DNA of 63,976 bases, filler included, from Lenisia limosa (taxonomy: Eukaryota > Protista > Breviatea): NCBI GenBank assembly GCA_001655205.1. It is 17 parts of 17 records of this genome, joined end to end, with 100 filler letters (N's around TTAATTAATTAA, not from the genome) between each part and the next. Parts side by side here need not be neighbours in the genome. Positions count along the whole stretch, not along the records: positions 3,766 to 9,438 come from LPNZ01009506.1; 16 more parts are not named here. One strand, 5' to 3'. The position numbers were made by a program, and so were the translations under genes. Shown piece after piece: positions 3,666 through 9,438 of the stretch (within the stretch, counting starts at the first letter, position 1; the number at the start of each line of letters is the position of its first letter). The notes under the pieces were generated by a model that did no database searches, was not told the origin of the DNA, and worked only from the letters and a program-made list of their open reading frames with translations.

Positions 3666-3933
3666 NNNNNNNNNNNNNNNNNNNNNNNNNNNNNNNNNNN
3701 NNNNNNNNNTTAATTAATTAANNNNNNNNNNNNNNNNNNNNNNNNNNNNNNNNNNNNNNNNNNNNGAAACTGTATCACACCAAAAAAGGGGGTAAATGGG
3801 ATGAATAAAGACTGAAGAATTTAGTGTATTTGATCACCATTTGAGAAAAAAAAGCAAAACATTTACGAGTGTGAGCGATAACGGTATCAACTACCCTTCA
3901 CAGGCCAAATCCAATAGGTATTTAAGGGCAAAC

Positions 3934-6900
3934 CTGGGGAGACGTTACATTGGCAGGACCAGGAATACCATCATTGTCGATGTCGTTGAAGTNNNNNNNN
4001 NNNNNNNNNNNNNNNNNNNNNNNNNNNNNNNNNNNNNNNNNNNNNNNNNNNNNNNNNNNNNNNNNNNNNNNNNNNNNNNNNNNNNACACCTGAGATTGGT
4101 GTGTGCATCTAATGTAGTAAATAATAGGAATTTGTGTTGGCGCTGGAAGATTGTGATGCGACTGGTATAATCAATTGTATAGCTTTGGTGTACCCGAAAT
4201 GATAAACATAGCCCATCTTGTATCACAGGTGTCACCAAGGCCCCATAATAATTATAAACATACTATGCATACTTTTTTTTATTATTATTATTATATGATA
4301 TTAAAATATGTATACTATCATATATCATATGACATGCAAATATATTATATACTACTACATCAACTCCCGCCTTGTACATCAACTCCCACCTTGTTATCAC
4401 AGCTGTCACCGATGCCATCCCCGTCGAGGTCACTTGCCTCAAGGCCGTCTTTCACTCCACACAGATCGAAACACTCAATCCCGTCTCCTTTGTAGGGGGC
4501 TGCGGGGGGTAAGCGATTGGGGATAAGTAAGAGATTGTAGAGCAAGGAAATCGTTTTGAAGCGAGAAAACACAGCATAGATAAACAAAGCATATGGCTAG
4601 GTAAACATGGAATACATAGAGATAAACAAGGCATATCTGATACTATTACGATAAACAGAGCATAGTATTAACGACCCACAGTCGCATTCGCAGTAATGTC
4701 CGCCCGGGGTGTTGTGACACGTTGCATTGACCGCACATCCTCCATGGTTGATCTGGGGAGGGGGNNNNNNNNNNNNNNNNNNAAAACCCAAAATCAACTC
4801 TGTTGGCTGATAACACGTGACGGTTAATAACAACAAAACAAACAAAGCCCATGCCAGTCGCTTCTACAGCCGTTATTATCGTACTTCTGGTTATATAATC
4901 TCACGGATACGGGATTAACGCTACCCCCCCCCCATACATCACATTCATTGATGTCCTTGCAGGTGGTGTTGGCGGGCACTGACGGGTCCAATTCATAGCC
5001 CTCCGCACAGATACAATGGAAAGATGCGACTGGGGGAGAGGGGGTAAGATGGAAATTTATAGCTAAAAAGAGTCCAAAATCAACTATGTTGCTGACAACA
5101 CACGACGGTTGAAAATAAACAAAGCCCAAACCAGACGCTTCTGCAGCGCCGCATCCCATAATTCCAGCGGGGGAAACAATTGGATGACTAGCCCCACCCT
5201 CACCATCATTAACGCAAATAGCCTGAGAATCTAGGTCACAAGTGTGCATGAACTCAGGCTTTACAGTGGTGCACTCGTCAATATCAACACAATCTCTCTG
5301 ATTATCCACAAGCTCGTAGCCCGGATCGCAGGAACAAACGAAGCCGATTGTTGGGTGGTCAGGGTTGTCAAGCTCGTTCGGACATGACGTGTCACCGGGG
5401 AGGGGGACGCAGTTCTGGTAGGAGTAAAATTGGAAAATGAAACAAAAAAAAAACCCTCAACTCTTTTGGCTGCCAACACACGACGGTTGATAACAACANN
5501 NNNNNNNNNNNNNNNNNNNNNNNNNNNNNNNNNNNNNNNNNNNNNNNNNNNNNNNNNNNNNNNNNNNNNNNNNNNNNNNNNNNNNNNNNNNNNNNNNNNN
5601 NNNNNNNNNNNNNNNNNNNNNNNNNNNNNNNNNNNNNNNNNNNNNNNNNNNNNNNNNNNNNNNNNNNNNNNNNNNNNNNNNNNNNNNNNNNNNNNNNNNN
5701 NNNNNNNNNNNNNATATTGAATTATAGTATTTGCCTGACTACAACTCTGCAAACATAATATAATATACTATGATATAAACTAGTATGTATGAACATCACT
5801 TCTATCCAATAACATCACCACCCACTGTGCACTGATGGTGACAGGTTCCAAGCCCGTCATTAAAGGCACAGTTGTCAATGTCCTCGCAGGTGAAGCCGTC
5901 TCCTGTGTATCCCTGGGGGGGGGGGGNNNNNNNNNNNNNNNNNNNNNNNNNNNNNNNNNNNNNNNNNNNNNNNNNNNNNNNNNNNNNNNNNNNNNNNNNN
6001 NNNNNNNNNNNNNNNNNNNNNNNNNNNNNNNNNNNNNNNNNNNNNNNNNNNNNNNNNNNNNNNNNNNTTTTGAATAAAGACAATAGCACAGCTACAATAC
6101 CAATATTTCCAAAGAGAGAAATGACCAACAACATAATAAATAATCCTACCTGGGGGCACGGTGCGCAGTCGAAATGCCCTCCGCAGGGGTAGTTCCAACA
6201 CTCCAGGCTGGTGGGGTGAAGGGAAACTTTAAACAACTCACAATCTTGTGGGTAAAAAGTGAGGAACATGGAAAGAAATAACAACATAAAGCAAAACAAG
6301 GATAGTGGTGGATATGAGCTAGAACCAGCGATTCCCTCGTCGATAATTTATCTGTCTTAGAGAAGCTCTGGATATAACGAAGATAATTTTGGAGTTGAAG
6401 ACTTGATGATACAAAATGGCAGTAGCAGCAATTGCACTTTTACAAACAAGGAGCCACATACAAGCAAGGGTTGGGGTCACAATAGTCAATATCGACACAA
6501 TGGTTGGTGGAGTTCATTTCCATATGTTCAGGACAAGAACAAGAAAACATAGGCACGAGGTCGGAGCAAATCACTGAGGTGTTGGTACATTGTGAGATAG
6601 CATTGCAGTCGTGAGTACCCGTGGAACACTCGTCAATGTTCTGGGGGGNNNNNNNNNNNNNNNNNNNNNNNNNNNNNNNNNNNNNNNNNNNNNNNNNNNN
6701 NNNNNNNNNNNNNNNNNNNNNNNNNNNNNNNNNNNNNNNNNNNNNNNNNNNNNNNNNNNNNNNNNNNNNNNNNCAAACACGAGCAACCAACGCTAGACAA
6801 AAACTAGATGACAAAAATACAAAAACTCAGTATATTACCACTACTGTCTACACGTTGCCCAAAAAGCAAGAGGGGAGGAGAAGCAAAATTGGCATACCAG

Positions 6901-9438
6901 GCATTCAGTGAGATCAGTCAGCTCATAACCCTCGTCACATGTGCAGTAGAAGCTGCCAGGCGTGTTGTGGCTAAATTTGTCAATGTTGAAAGTCTCATTA
7001 AATCCTCTCTAAATATTGCTATTTTGACAATCTTTTTTGGACCATAGGGAAGCCTTAATTATTGGTCTTTATCATTTGCCTAGACTAATACGTAACAAGA
7101 ATAGGGGTCCACCAACAGAGTTTTGCTTAATTTCAGAAAAAGACTGAATTTCTCGATAAAACTGCGAAAACAATCGATACTTTACTAGTCTTTACGGGTA
7201 CAAAGTTGAAACCCTTCCAACCAGTTGTGTGGCTGACTGCACTTATTAGCGCCAATGGGGTCAAGTTCGCACTCGTCAATGTCCGTACTGGGGGGGGGGG
7301 GGGNNNNNNNNNNNNNNNNNNNNNNNNNNNNNNNNNNNNNNNNNNNNNNNNNNNNNNNNNNNNNNNNNNNNNNNNNNNNNNNNNNNNNNNNNNNNNNNNN
7401 NNNNNAAAGTTGCAACTCCAAGTGGAACAAACTCTCCTCAGCAGTATACCCCCCCACCAGGTAGCGGTGTAAGAGTCGCCAACGTATCCCTCGGGACACG
7501 GCGGGCAAATATACGACCCAATTAAGTTCTCGCAGACAACCTGGGGGTGGGGGTGACATAACTAAGAAGGAAACGCATAAAATCAATAAAATATACAACA
7601 GTAAGCAGAATGTCAGCAGAAGATCCAATACTCAGTAGAAGATCCAAGACTCAGCAGAGTATATTAAATAGTCGTCCCCCTTACCAGAGCGTCACATCCA
7701 CCATTATCTGTTTGTGTGCACTCGTTGATGTCTTTACAGGCGGTTTTACCTATAAGATCAGAGAGCTTCCTATTTGGATAAAAATATTGCATCAATTCGA
7801 ATACGATATATTTTCATTTTGATCCAAAACAACCCATTCCCATTCCCGCAGTTTCATACTATTATTTCAAATAGTCCCCGTAATGATCTGAAAAGTGACG
7901 TGCAGAGGAGGTACTTGATATTAATCTCTCAAAGTTTTCACAAATAAGTTTACAGACTACAAAAGAAGTGAAATGTGGTGTAAGGGAAAGTACGTCGCCG
8001 CAGTTCTGATGATGCTGTTTAGGCTGTGGTAGGAGGATGATGATGCTGTGTAAGCCACCATCCCTACCCGATGATATTAAATTCCCCAAAGATTCACCTC
8101 CATTCCCATTGCCAAAGATTCATACCCGTTCCAGAGTAGCCGTCAGGACAGGGTGAGCACTCGAAGGAGCCTGCAGTATTGGTGCAGTTGGTCAGAACGT
8201 CACAGGGGTCCAGTAAACACTCGTCGTCGTCTGGAGGGTGAGGTTTGGGATACGATGTGGGATTATGTATGGGGAGGGCGGGTAAAACTGATTTATCTAC
8301 TTCCCAGCCCATACCAATATGTGATATGCATACCGATACAGGTGAACAGGTCGGGTTGCAAGGTGAATCCACTATTGCATTCACAGGAGAAAGTTCCGGG
8401 GGAGTTCACACAGACCTACAGACGTTATCATTCTTCATAATGTATAATATAGAGAGATGTATCAAGTCATTATTTGCGTCTTATTCTGTTTTTTCTTTGC
8501 TTTGTTGTTCTCAGCCCTTGTGTGTTGCTTGCCAACAGAGTTGATTTTGGGCTTTTTTTGTCTCATGAATTTTACAATTTTACGTCCTCTCCCCTCCCCC
8601 TTGTTTTGTTCCATAATTCCGCCCACCTGGTCACAGATATTGAGAGCCTCATCGGCACACTCATCGATATCGACACACGAGTCCTTATCCAAGGGGTCGA
8701 CTGAATAGCCCTCGTGACAGGAGCAGATGTAACTTCCGGGTGTATTCTCACATATCTAAGGGGGGGGGGGNNNNNNNNNNNNNNNNNNNNNNNNNNNNNN
8801 NNNNNNNNNNNNNNNNNNNNNNNNNNNNNNNNAACCAAATAATCTGAAACTCCAAACACAAAACAAAACAAAAAAACACACAGTCATATTTATGAGGGTG
8901 CTCATTTGATGTGAAATTGCAGGGGTGATGGTTCATAATACTTTAAATATGATAATCTTCGACAGTCCCCCCTCCCACTTGTCTGCAGGGAACTTCAAGT
9001 ATGCATTCATCACGTTCGATACAGATGGACCCGTCGCCGTCGTAACCCGAGGGGCATGGCGAGCATGTTCCTGACGACGTGGTGTACATGAAGGATAACT
9101 CTTGGATTGCTGATAGTCTGGGGGGGGGGGGNNNNNNNNNNNNNNNNNNNNNNNNNNNNNNNNNNNNNNNNNNNNNNNNNNNNNNNNACAAATCAGTTGG
9201 CTGACAACACACAAGGGCTAATAACAACAAAACAAAACCAGTCAAATTGGTAAATTTTGAAAATCAAGGTCCAAAATCTACTCTTCTCTAAAAAAACAAC
9301 TCGATTGACTATAAAATTGAGAGAGTGCTCGGTAGGTTTAGCCAGACCCACGAGTTAGTAACACCGACGAGGGCATTTGGAGAGAACGGTGCCATTGAGG
9401 TCAGTTTGAGGCCTTCTCCCAGTGAGCCGGCAGGGGCT
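3934..9438 (-). CDS. Large extracellular protein with many Ca-binding EGF repeats followed by thrombospondin type-3-like Asp-rich repeats, partial
   Basis: Spliced exons give repeated DIDEC/DINEC...C..N...G.(Y/F).C.C..GY units, e.g. DINECD|[23 protein letters not shown] and [35 protein letters not shown]. Exon 4390-4499 has [13 protein letters not shown] and exon 3934-3992 has NDIDNDGIP. Confidence 0.87.
4753..4872 (-). mobile_element. Family A repeat ending at 3' splice acceptor (intron 4753-4937)
   Basis: Minus strand: ...gcgactggcatgggctttgtttgttttgttgtt...gccaacagagttgattttgggtttt[N]ccccctccccAG|atcaaccat (exon INHGG). Confidence 0.8.
5030..5169 (-). mobile_element. Family A repeat, near full length, ending at acceptor (intron 5030-5203)
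   Basis: gctggaattatgggatgcggcgctgcagaagcg...taaatttccatcttaccccctctcccccAG|tcgcatct; the exons join in frame as D-V-A-S-F-H-C. Confidence 0.85.
5415..5498 (-). mobile_element. Family A repeat ending at acceptor
   Basis: ...ttttccaattttactcctaccAG|aactgcgtc (exon NCVPLPG). Confidence 0.8.
8495..8601 (+). mobile_element. Family A repeat, antisense to host gene, G-rich end close to the donor
   Basis: Plus strand gccaacagagttgattttgggc...ttttacgtcctctcccctccccc inside a minus-strand EGF-gene intron whose donor lies ~25 nt from the run. Confidence 0.8.
9118..9245 (-). mobile_element. Family A repeat ending at acceptor (centre in gap)
   Basis: C-run+AG at 9118; the element body (ttggctgacaacacacaagggctaataacaacaaaacaaa) resumes after the N gap. 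Confidence 0.7.

Follow-up and report, generated by a model that had tools for sequence, protein, structure and literature searches.

The window analysed here is a 63,976-nt stretch joined from parts of 17 records of the Lenisia limosa assembly GCA_001655205.1. The piece under study (positions 3,766 to 9,438, from LPNZ01009506.1) carries a gene for a multi-EGF protein, whose introns hold copies of several repeats, referred to as families A and B and repeat C (Table 1). Removal of the 14 introns, all of which are GT..AG, joins 1552 nt into one stop-free reading frame of 517 aa, and the product is an unbroken array of EGF and calcium-binding EGF (cbEGF) modules with a thrombospondin type-3 repeat at its end, single exons matching the Pfam families cEGF and EGF_CA. 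The original prediction, made from the sequence alone, had within this piece placed splice acceptors at 4753, 5030, 5415 and 9118, each supplied by a dispersed element (our family A); all four positions proved exact, and the frame is restored across each. In RNA run X2, the sole RNA run of the study, the exons of the EGF gene had no coverage and only element-bearing contigs were shown.

An independent contig from the same sample (L001; ENA ERZ3820729 NODE_5171) is 100% identical to the piece in every shared block and fills four of its gaps, among them 4765-4782, which turns out to be continuous intronic sequence that contains a family-A tail and leaves the reading frame unaffected. The introns ending at 7288, 8756 and 9118 were read in part only (gaps 7304-7405, 8771-8832, and 9132-9187), and a search of ENA for a contig spanning 6774-9438, made through the ATG-started ORF 8457-8705, returned no record. 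Since six of the eight internal gaps abut a C run, the combination of repeat and C runs might be taken for an assembly artefact, i.e., for mis-joins made at homopolymers. We find this scarcely credible, however, as the contig of an independent assembler (metaSPAdes-style NODE naming) matches the piece at every shared base and continues across the four gaps, the junctions give back the 517-aa frame, and the same architecture is present in nine other contigs.

Table 1. Coordinates of the EGF gene, its repeats and two filled gaps (positions in the window unless L001 is named)
Feature	Position	Strand	Description
Host gene	4390..9117	-	multi-EGF/calcium-binding EGF protein; 15 exons
Exons 1-5	9117-8979, 8755-8627, 8415-8334, 8230-8126, 7749-7685	-	
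Exons 6-10	7540-7458, 7287-7222, 6970-6898, 6640-6462, 6207-6150	-	
Exons 11-15	5912-5826, 5414-5204, 5029-4938, 4752-4680, 4499-4390	-	
Family-A copy, sense, 5'-truncated	4760..4870	-	3' end of intron 4937-4753; L001 1908/1926-2045; 91% to consensus
Family-A copy, sense, full length	5040..5170	-	3' end of 174-nt intron 5203-5030; 80% to consensus
Family-A copy, sense, full length	5420..5498 (visible 3' part)	-	L001 1239-1376; 89% to consensus
Family-A copy, sense, in gap 5927-6067	L001 727-847	-	5'-truncated at consensus position 17-21; 3' end of intron 6149-5913
Family-A copy, sense, visible middle part	9189..9236	-	intron before exon 9117-8979; 91% over 44 nt
Family-A copy, only one antisense to gene	8492..8581	+	inside intron 8626-8416; 87% identical
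Family B	6642..6800	-	3' end of intron 6897-6641; partly in gap 6649-6773; L001 1-125
Family-B fragment (GTGTTTGGAGTTTCAGATTATTTGGTT)	8756..8860	-	then gap 8771-8832, C11-TTAG; 3' end of intron 8978-8756; compared with B copies of contigs L004 and L008
Repeat C, high-copy	7030..7171	+	inside intron 7221-6971; antisense to gene, towards donor
Assembly gap	4765-4782		really 27 nt (ttttgtttcatacttttttcaatttta); L001 2014-2040; flanks 100% identical
Assembly gap	5927-6067	-	really 168 nt, filled by L001 701-868; conceals one more sense family-A copy

Family A in the introns of the EGF gene

Five family-A copies lie sense to the EGF gene, at the acceptors ending 9118, 5913, 5415, 5030 and 4753, and the visible ones stop 5-20 nt ahead of the AGs ending 4753, 5030, 5415 and 9118. 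The copy closest to the last exon matches clearly from about consensus position 23, with the HMM reaching weakly to position 8, and its tail lies in gap 4765-4782, followed by CCCCCTCCCC and the AG (4754-4753). Next, 34 nt of unrelated sequence, beginning GTGAGGGTGGGG, lead up to the copy at 5040-5170, after which come CCCCCTCTCCCCC and AG (5031-5030); the sole contig there has single-copy depth and offers no alternative joint. The copy visible at 5420-5498 has its 5' 59 nt within gap 5499-5713, forms the 3' end of intron 5825-5415, ends in TTTTACTCCTACC-AG (5416-5415) and has ~270 nt of unrelated sequence upstream. The copy concealed in gap 5927-6067 is flanked by a direct duplication (ATACATCCCCCTCCCC / ATACATGTACATTCCCTCCCC), with C14 and AG (5914-5913) after it, while the tail of the copy at 9189-9236 falls in gap 9132-9187, ahead of C12 and AG (9119-9118). 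One intronic antisense copy had been predicted, at 8495, and it is indeed there: the C-rich end of its tail (8582-8600) comes to within ~26 nt of the donor GTGGGCGG, in an intron whose acceptor is ctgtag, with no C run. Element-free, unique introns of the same gene also finish in a C run and AG (7542, 4501).

The other two repeats are related to family A in part. Family B, at 6642-6800, has the 5' region TAGCGTTGGTTGCTCGTGTTTG and a tail ...TTCTTCATCGAAATTTTCATCGGTTTT that runs into C12 and AG, and shares with family A only the last ~30 nt, as SINEs with a common partner LINE do in their 3' region; the same family-B sequences adjoin A copies in L004 and L008. Repeat C contains the core CCAACAGAGTT, as does family A, reaches a summed depth of 11,800 (vs ~28 for single-copy sequence), and is joined to family-A sequence in other contigs.

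Abundance and anatomy of family A

Family A is present in thousands of copies, its core having a summed contig depth of ~112,000 against ~28 for single-copy sequence. We read 40 copies in 87 kb (nine stretches) and 3 in L009, i.e., 43 in 95 kb, and identity to the family consensus ranges from 66 to 96%, which bears out the predicted spread from near-consensus to eroded copies. As with introners, near-identical copies are found in unrelated genes, including those for the EGF protein, a kinesin, a guanylate cyclase, and an ankyrin protein. The family-A peptide (E≤1e-3) was found in 547 representative ORFs or ORF clusters of public protein collections, while a family-A 24-mer gave no match among JGI metagenome contigs and an ORF reading through one copy matched only itself in the protein collection. 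Two side observations concern the databases: public collections contain hundreds of spurious "protein" clusters that are translations of family A, and a bacterial genome bin includes host contigs that carry it.

Among the 40 copies, 12 start at consensus position 2-3 and the starts of the other 28 are scattered between positions 7 and 96, some copies of ≥90% identity being among these, and 30 of the 40 reach position 128 or beyond. Thus, the family has the constant 3' end (...CATAAATTTTCCAATTTTAC) and variable 5' truncation of a SINE. Head-to-tail joints carry 0-2 extra bases (TTTTAC-T-TACGC, TTTTAC-TG-TACGC), and there are partial 5' re-starts (e.g., consensus 11-54 followed by 4-91); the enzymes of target-specific non-LTR retrotransposons such as R2 make end-to-end template jumps that give rise to head-to-tail joints. 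Flanking duplications vary in length, from 16-21 nt (intron ending 5913) to CCCCAC (L004:3401), C12 (L008:3888) and CCCC (intron ending 5030), and only the first is long, the rest being short and C-rich such that most could be chance. In about half of the stacks, the newer copy follows the older tail with no intervening C run and no duplication, and in 3 of 3 stacks the copy on the acceptor side is the younger (identity 73 then 96%, 75 then 92%, and 77 then 94%). Target-site duplications and insertion polymorphism had both been suggested as checks: the former gave this one long and several short C-rich cases, and the latter gave no presence/absence allele, with no such joint seen at 4783-5498 at 98% likeness.

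Not every feature is that of a classical SINE. A search of Rfam with L001, which holds four family-A copies, yielded no match at E≤1 and no tRNA, 7SL or 5S homology, so that family A has no internal Pol III promoter derived from these, and its T7-10 runs would stop Pol III, which argues against Pol III transcription. Also weighed was a DNA transposon of the non-autonomous kind (MITE-like or rolling-circle) that prefers C runs or the TTTTAC motif as its target. Most introners classified so far are terminal-inverted-repeat DNA elements (PMC12130899). Rolling-circle elements are known for tandem head-to-tail copies, and the ends GGAGTGATGGGA and TCCAATTTTACTCC bear a weak inverted resemblance (11 of 14). 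This resemblance lies inside conserved ends, and terminal inverted repeats as such are absent from family A; the conserved GTAYGCT reaches beyond the putative repeat, for which reason the terminal-inverted-repeat reading of the ends was dropped. Nor is there a duplication of fixed length as in MITEs, the strong 5' truncation and constant 3' end are seen even in young copies, and the element lacks the TC...CTRR termini typical of Helitrons, all of which makes a DNA transposon unlikely.

Composite introns and C-run acceptors

Family A sits sense to the gene, within the C-rich tract directly before the acceptor AG, the gene strand being independently proven at only four loci. Beyond the EGF gene, Pfam homology starts 0-3 residues past the C run and AG in the kinesin (P0003), guanylate cyclase (P0055) and ankyrin (P0117) loci, and in 55 of 78 read-through ORFs the residue after the proline run is compatible with (C)n followed directly by AG. 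Random insertion could lead to the same picture if selection kept only sense, acceptor-adjacent copies as a harmless or helpful pyrimidine tract: the last 42 nt of the sense strand are T/C-rich and AG-free, the antisense strand has AGs and a GTAAAA donor-like site, and in mammals selection is known to bias the orientation of repeats within introns (PMC3088655). Insertions in the interior of an intron are usually tolerated; even so, ~28 of the 33 copies with an intact 3' end lie ≤50 nt from a C-rich tract and AG, young copies (92-96%) show the pattern already, and the age order in stacks, together with C runs on both flanks, points to a site-specific event. We consequently hold an origin without targeting to be improbable.

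The C runs themselves are far more widespread than the element. In the 87 kb, runs of at least six Cs number 134, against 9.8 expected (~14-fold), and a family-A tail lies upstream of only 19 of the 134. As runs of C ahead of AG, and of G behind GT, far outnumber the element genome-wide, family A probably gives the branch-point region and not the AG, which, like the C run, appears to be contributed by the target. The proposed takeover of branch point, tract and acceptor thus most likely stands for the branch-point region and part of the tract, and not for the acceptor dinucleotide. Targeting of homopolymers is likewise not the whole explanation: among unoccupied runs, those of G behind a donor, which would present an identical target on the opposite strand, outnumber those of C by about two to one (29 vs 13), yet such G-run sites hardly ever carry a copy (1 antisense copy in ~40), so that C-run availability or homopolymer targeting alone does not explain the orientation bias.

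In teleost introns, (GT)n and (AC)n at the two ends pair and thereby bring the splice sites together. The introns studied here are similar in having complementary simple sequences at their ends, although these are homopolymers and the pairing is predicted, with the G run after GT folding onto the C run before AG. Against shuffled sequence, the two folds gave z = -2.2 and -0.9; as only one of them exceeds the shuffles, pairing as a selected structure was dropped.

Element-bearing introns are composite. Between donor and element, 34, ~66, ~100 and ~270 nt are found in the EGF gene and ~215 nt in the kinesin intron; all five proven introns of the EGF gene have a leader of unrelated sequence (34 to ~270 nt, where ~35 to several hundred nt had been predicted); these leaders are also unrelated to one another and, where assembled in the window, have single-copy depth. 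Introners, described in Micromonas, Aureococcus, dinoflagellates and fungi (PMC9860276, PMC12130899), are like family A in being short, non-autonomous elements that lie sense in the introns of unrelated genes with a splice-relevant end, and in occurring as thousands of copies of differing age, here apparently in an aquatic eukaryote. An introner, however, is a whole intron created on insertion, whereas family A is the 3' segment of composite introns and stacks within one intron.

If family A were nonetheless a true introner, it would land in an exon, make an intron with its own branch site, tract and AG and recruit an upstream GT, and the unrelated 5' parts would have arisen through later insertion or through divergence of element sequence. 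Many unrelated genes do have introns that end in similar sequence, 6 of 11 full-length copies start with GTAYGC, a plausible donor (GTATGC serves as donor elsewhere in the EGF gene, at 8333 and 6897), a full copy with C run and AG would be a complete 155-nt intron, and introners that bring just one splice site have been described (PMC9860276). Set against this, no exon directly adjoins the 5' end of any of the 11-12 full-length copies, as one should in a whole-intron introner, whose ends bear the splice sites, and the leaders described above are in all five proven introns. In addition, the EGF modules lack no coding sequence across element-bearing introns, and in two neighbouring EGF repeats an intron interrupts the same site in the same phase (CRQ|IC, CDQ|VC) with differing repeat content, which suggests that the intron is older than the repeats. 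Finally, two or three stacked copies in one intron cannot each have made that intron. An introner is therefore improbable here, and of the two options in the original prediction, an introner or insertion into the polypyrimidine tract of an intron already in place, the composite introns, C-rich duplications and stacking favour the second, as the prediction itself did, though most likely without its takeover of the AG.

Possible routes of insertion and their meaning

Constant 3' ends with 5' truncation, variable duplications, head-to-tail joints and younger copies on the acceptor side fit LINE-type retroposition into a pre-existing C-rich tract, and the anatomy as a whole points to ordinary retroposition of this type with an unusual target. 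We thus lean, with modest confidence, towards family A being a ~140 nt non-autonomous, SINE-like retroposon aimed at the ends of existing introns, and not an intron creator. The introns would predate the insertions, and integration would proceed by target-primed reverse transcription through a putative LINE enzyme, which would nick the bottom-strand G run and prime at the C-rich 3' terminus of the element's RNA; the partner LINE would be expected to end ...TTTTACTCC(C)n. New copies land between the older tail and the C run, building stacks in which the youngest adjoins the exon. A promoter of its own would probably be unneeded, as thousands of sense copies would be transcribed within host introns. 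The element body contains several AGs, the last ~42 nt from its end, and by the rule that the first AG after the branch is used, the branch point must fall in its last 40 nt, where TTCAT and TTTTAC, both common to family B, are candidate sites. Accordingly qualified, the element would take over the branch site and lengthen the pyrimidine tract, while the C run and AG would remain the host's.

Known systems offer partial parallels. Target-specific non-LTR retrotransposons of the R2 and Utopia types and their SINEs, which go into simple repeats or multicopy RNA genes (PMC4640811, PMC5035012), insert in one orientation into a defined repeat and have 5'-truncated copies, as family A does, and integration of such retrotransposons into simple repeats is established (PMC4640811). 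Family A differs in that its target would be a C homopolymer doubling as the pyrimidine tract of an acceptor, which makes the inserted copy part of the splicing signal, and in that its partner and endonuclease are putative. Antisense Alu exonisation and the canine merle SINE (PMC2330237, PMC7349775) resemble family A in that a homopolymer end before AG influences a 3' splice site, but these are single loci or accidental antisense exonisations via poly(A), whereas family A is family-wide and sense, and has a C run and constitutive acceptors. Our literature search found no paper describing an acceptor-stacking element like family A.

A related scheme, which we consider possible though doubtful, is that family A is a retroposed excised intron, that is, a self-propagating intron 3' end and parasite of acceptor sites. 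This idea comes from the donor-like GTAYGC at the 5' end and the branch site with (C)n-AG at the 3' end, the very features that an intron RNA has at its two ends after splicing. Thousands of host introns would supply such RNA at no cost, and a LINE enzyme might copy it back at other acceptors, the (C)nAG end pairing with CT(G)n of the bottom strand, in a genome where G runs and C runs frame the introns.

Returning to the putative SINE-like retroposon, work on mobile elements and introns has centred on introners, which create introns, while family A colonises, in one orientation, the last 150 bases of existing ones. The occurrence across the genome of long runs of G following GT and of C preceding AG is an unusual intron architecture that may be the target or the product of element activity. 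If the reading is confirmed, family A must have displaced the branch site in thousands of introns of its host, and the splicing signal itself would be a safe harbour for a retroposon. Screens that compare intron ends could then take such families for introners, and the copies would provide natural material for asking to what extent a spliceosome copes when both branch site and tract are replaced wholesale.

Host gene and the repeats that close its introns

The minus strand of positions 3766-9438 appears to carry one gene, its exon ends set by sequence: 15 joined exons (9117-8979 down to 4499-4390) total 1552 nt, in which just one frame is open throughout, with 517 stop-free residues predicted to form EGF and calcium-binding EGF modules in uninterrupted succession and then a thrombospondin type-3 repeat. 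Each of the 14 introns has GT..AG ends, the Pfam domains cEGF and EGF_CA are matched by single exons, and 10 of 15 donors read GTGGG or have a longer G tract. The acceptors originally placed at 4753, 5030, 5415, and 9118 are correct and agree with this model, and the single antisense copy reported at 8495 is present. On the 3′ side of exon 4499-4390 (4086-4389, minus strand), the next type-3-repeat-like coding piece, GLGDTCD at ~4225-4245, has no canonical in-frame AG acceptor, and the gene model is provisional beyond that exon. The repeat-free intron 4679-4500 holds ~4 tandem units of ~20 nt (ATGCYTTGTTTATCTMTATG...) at 4560-4660 (minus strand).

Family A, the dispersed repeat at intron 3′ ends, has a 140-nt consensus built from 17 long copies and running from GTACGCTGGAGTGATGGGATGCGG to CATAAATTTTCCAATTTTA; the genomic sequence then continues with (T)C, a run of Cs, and in most cases AG. 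Family B, a second repeat, has only its last ~30 nt in common with family A, also closes with a C run and AG, and is stacked with family A inside the same introns. A third high-copy repeat extends towards the unusual donor GTTGGAAGGG of its intron and is joined to family-A sequence in contigs elsewhere.

Positions of acceptors, repeats, C-run gaps, and homology starts
Feature	Position	Strand	Remark
Host-gene acceptors (AG ends)	9118, 8756, 8416, 8231, 7750, 7541, 7288, 6971, 6641, 6208, 5913, 5415, 5030, 4753, 4500	minus	exon ends by sequence
Sense family-A copies at intron ends	AGs ending 9118, 5913, 5415, 5030, 4753	minus	sequence and L001
Antisense family-A copy	8492-8581	plus	near its intron's donor
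Family B (...GGAGTTTCAGATTATTCGGTTCGTGATTAGTACCTTTATGCCAATATTCTTCATCGAAATTTCCTTCGTTTTAC)	6642-6800, 8756-8860	minus	ends two introns, acceptors 6641 and 8756
Family B, other contigs	L004 9280-9461; L008 1726 onward		sequence
Third high-copy repeat	7030-7171	plus (antisense)	intron 7221-6971; summed depth ~11,800 vs 28
C-run gaps	4765-4782, 5927-6067, 6649-6773, 7304-7405, 8771-8832, 9132-9187		six of eight internal gaps
Kinesin	profile positions 127-187, from residue 63		Pfam homology after proline run
Guanylate cyclase	profile positions 118-156, from residue 49		Pfam homology after proline run
Ankyrin	from residue 164		Pfam homology after proline run

Intron 5203-5030 is 174 nt long, a multiple of three, and stop-free, so a 161-aa ORF crosses it and was entered as a cEGF protein by a metagenome gene caller. 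Through an ORF crossing this intron we found L001, a 3000-nt contig of an ENA metagenome assembly (ERZ3820729, NODE_5171) that matches the window at 100% identity in each of the five blocks they share and spans four of the gaps. Gap 4765-4782 is truly 27 nt, continuous and intronic, contains the element's tail, and has no bearing on the frame; gap 5927-6067 is 168 nt and conceals a further sense family-A copy; and gap 5499-5713 is 216 nt and contains the first 59 nt of the copy that ends at 5420. The scaffold's gap estimates are wrong (18, 141, and 93 nt vs true sizes of 27, 168, and 29 nt). Most internal gaps adjoin a sense-strand C run, starting exactly at the run before the acceptor, and every fillable one of these conceals the tail of a repeat copy; homopolymer and repeat together evidently caused the scaffold breaks.

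Copy anatomy, abundance, and age

Nine stretches (87 kb) held 40 family-A copies, a density that is overestimated as the loci were picked for containing a copy. Starts lie at consensus position 2-3 in 12 of the 40 and anywhere from 7 to 96 in the remaining 28, among them copies with 90% identity or more to the consensus (starting at 8, 11, 14, 39, 42, 50, and 96), while 30 of the 40 extend to position 128 or beyond. Where copies are joined head-to-tail, 0-2 extra bases and no C run lie between them (TTTTAC-T-TACGC, TTTTAC-TG-TACGC, TTTAC-A-CGC), and re-starts of part of the 5′ region are common in DNA and ORFs, with one such joint in a contig of the RNA run. Template jumping is a property of non-LTR reverse transcriptases, and these joints and re-starts match it. 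The anatomy thus points to retroposition. Flanking direct duplications range from 0 to ~16-21 nt. We found no inverted termini of family A that hold up, no Rfam match, and no empty site (an allele without the element) for window 4783-5498 at 98% likeness. Target specificity of non-LTR elements is described in PMC4640811; a literature search for any such acceptor-end element found nothing of the kind.

In contigs of the DNA run, the family-A core reached a summed depth of ~112,000 vs ~28 for single-copy sequence, and 4,000-6,800 vs 33 at 98% likeness. Element-bearing RNA is present in the RNA library of the same study, where the host-gene exons are uncovered: a poly(A) RNA contig at a loose end at window 4870 carries two copies joined head-to-tail (…TTTTACAATTTTACTCCCC then TGGGATGCGGTGCTGC…). 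Searched against 1.84 billion proteins, a profile built on the open frame of the element matched 547 representative ORFs at a cut-off of E ≤ 1e-3 and 216 at E ≤ 1e-10. At least 547 public "protein" clusters are translations of the repeat. Three further copies, with C-run acceptors, lie on a 10.5-kb contig (CBDLPA010000039.1, from ERZ3820729.1608) filed in the bin "uncultured Colwellia sp. isolate SRR2018010_maxbin2_1", which is used as a species representative; this is eukaryotic contamination of a bacterial MAG.

Identity to the consensus spans 66-96% (median 86%) and therefore indicates long-lasting activity, bearing out the earlier suggestion of repeated activity over time. In all three stacks with both copies datable, the acceptor-side copy is the younger (73 then 96%, 75 then 92%, and 77 then 94%).

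Probable insertion into existing introns

The original prediction left two possibilities, an introner that creates introns or an element inserting at the acceptor tract of existing ones. Across five modelled introns, the sequence ahead of the element measures 34, ~66, ~100, and ~270 nt, and in the cut first intron it is 130 nt or longer; these 5′ parts are mutually unrelated and at single-copy depth where the window assembles them. No exon abuts the 5′ end of any of 11-12 full-length copies. No part of an EGF module is missing where introns interrupt it, and therefore no coding sequence was converted to intron. Neighbouring EGF repeats share intron place and phase (CRQ/IC and CDQ/VC, the slash marking the intron), with family B closing one intron and antisense family A lying near the 5′ end of the other, which suggests that this intron predates the mobile repeats. 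On these sequence grounds, family A would not be an introner in the strict sense, and insertion into existing introns is favoured by the unrelated 5′ parts and exon-free 5′ ends.

The AG after the C run looks like an acceptor at other loci too. In three unrelated genes, Pfam homology opens mid-domain, 0-3 residues past a proline run encoded by the C run, and for kinesin the upstream exons were found on the same strand, giving an intron of ~368 nt with the element as its last ~150 nt. Among 78 ORFs with at least three prolines in a run after the element, the next residue is compatible with (C)n directly followed by AG in 55 (Q in 24; S or R in 18; G, A, V, or D in 13), and where the 3′ end of a copy is intact, a C-rich tract and AG follow within 50 nt in ~28 of 33 cases.

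Homopolymers, orientation, and the predicted branch point

A census of both strands of 86.9 kb, with expectations from shuffles, found 134 C runs of at least 6 (9.8 expected) and 65 of at least 10 (0.06 expected); 18 are directly followed by AG (0.8 expected) and 30 by AC (0.86 expected), i.e., GT(G)n donors of the opposite strand, and GT followed within 6 nt by at least six Gs occurs 66 times (4.2 expected). Introns are framed by these homopolymers at positions 3766-9438 and in L001-L009, the contigs with copies: a G run directly follows the donor GT, and a C run leads straight into the acceptor AG. All five host-gene introns with a long donor G run have a C run at their 3′ end as well, and the two runs are paired in predicted folds. 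A family-A tail lies in the 45 nt upstream of just 19 of the 134 runs, and C runs characterise the genome rather than family A. Since they far exceed family-A tails and repeat-free introns of the host gene likewise end CACCCCCACCCCC-AG and CTTACCCCCCGC-AG, the C run and AG would most simply belong to the host, against the earlier proposal that the element supplies the acceptor. Insertion would then fall within the host C tract or at its 5′ edge.

Targeting of homopolymers is insufficient by itself, because it predicts many antisense copies beside donors: runs without a family-A tail are of donor type in 29 cases vs 13 of acceptor type, those with a tail in 1 vs 5, and a single copy out of ~40 runs antisense to a proven gene, with gene strand independently proven at four loci only. 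The enzyme may recognise CT(G)n rather than GT(G)n, the terminal AG of the element RNA may count, or selection may purge antisense copies, which would base-pair with the numerous sense copies sharing their transcript. Six of 11 full-length copies start with GTAYGC, a donor form of the host gene itself, and since this start and a (C)n-AG end are the ends of an excised intron, the element could be a retroposed excised intron, a reading we consider unlikely.

For copies inserted into existing introns, acceptor choice by the standard first-AG rule would locate the branch point. AGs occur in the element body and its last 42 nt are AG-free, so a copy-bearing intron would have to branch inside those last 42 nt, where the candidate branch motifs TTCAT and TTTTAC belong to the part common to families A and B.
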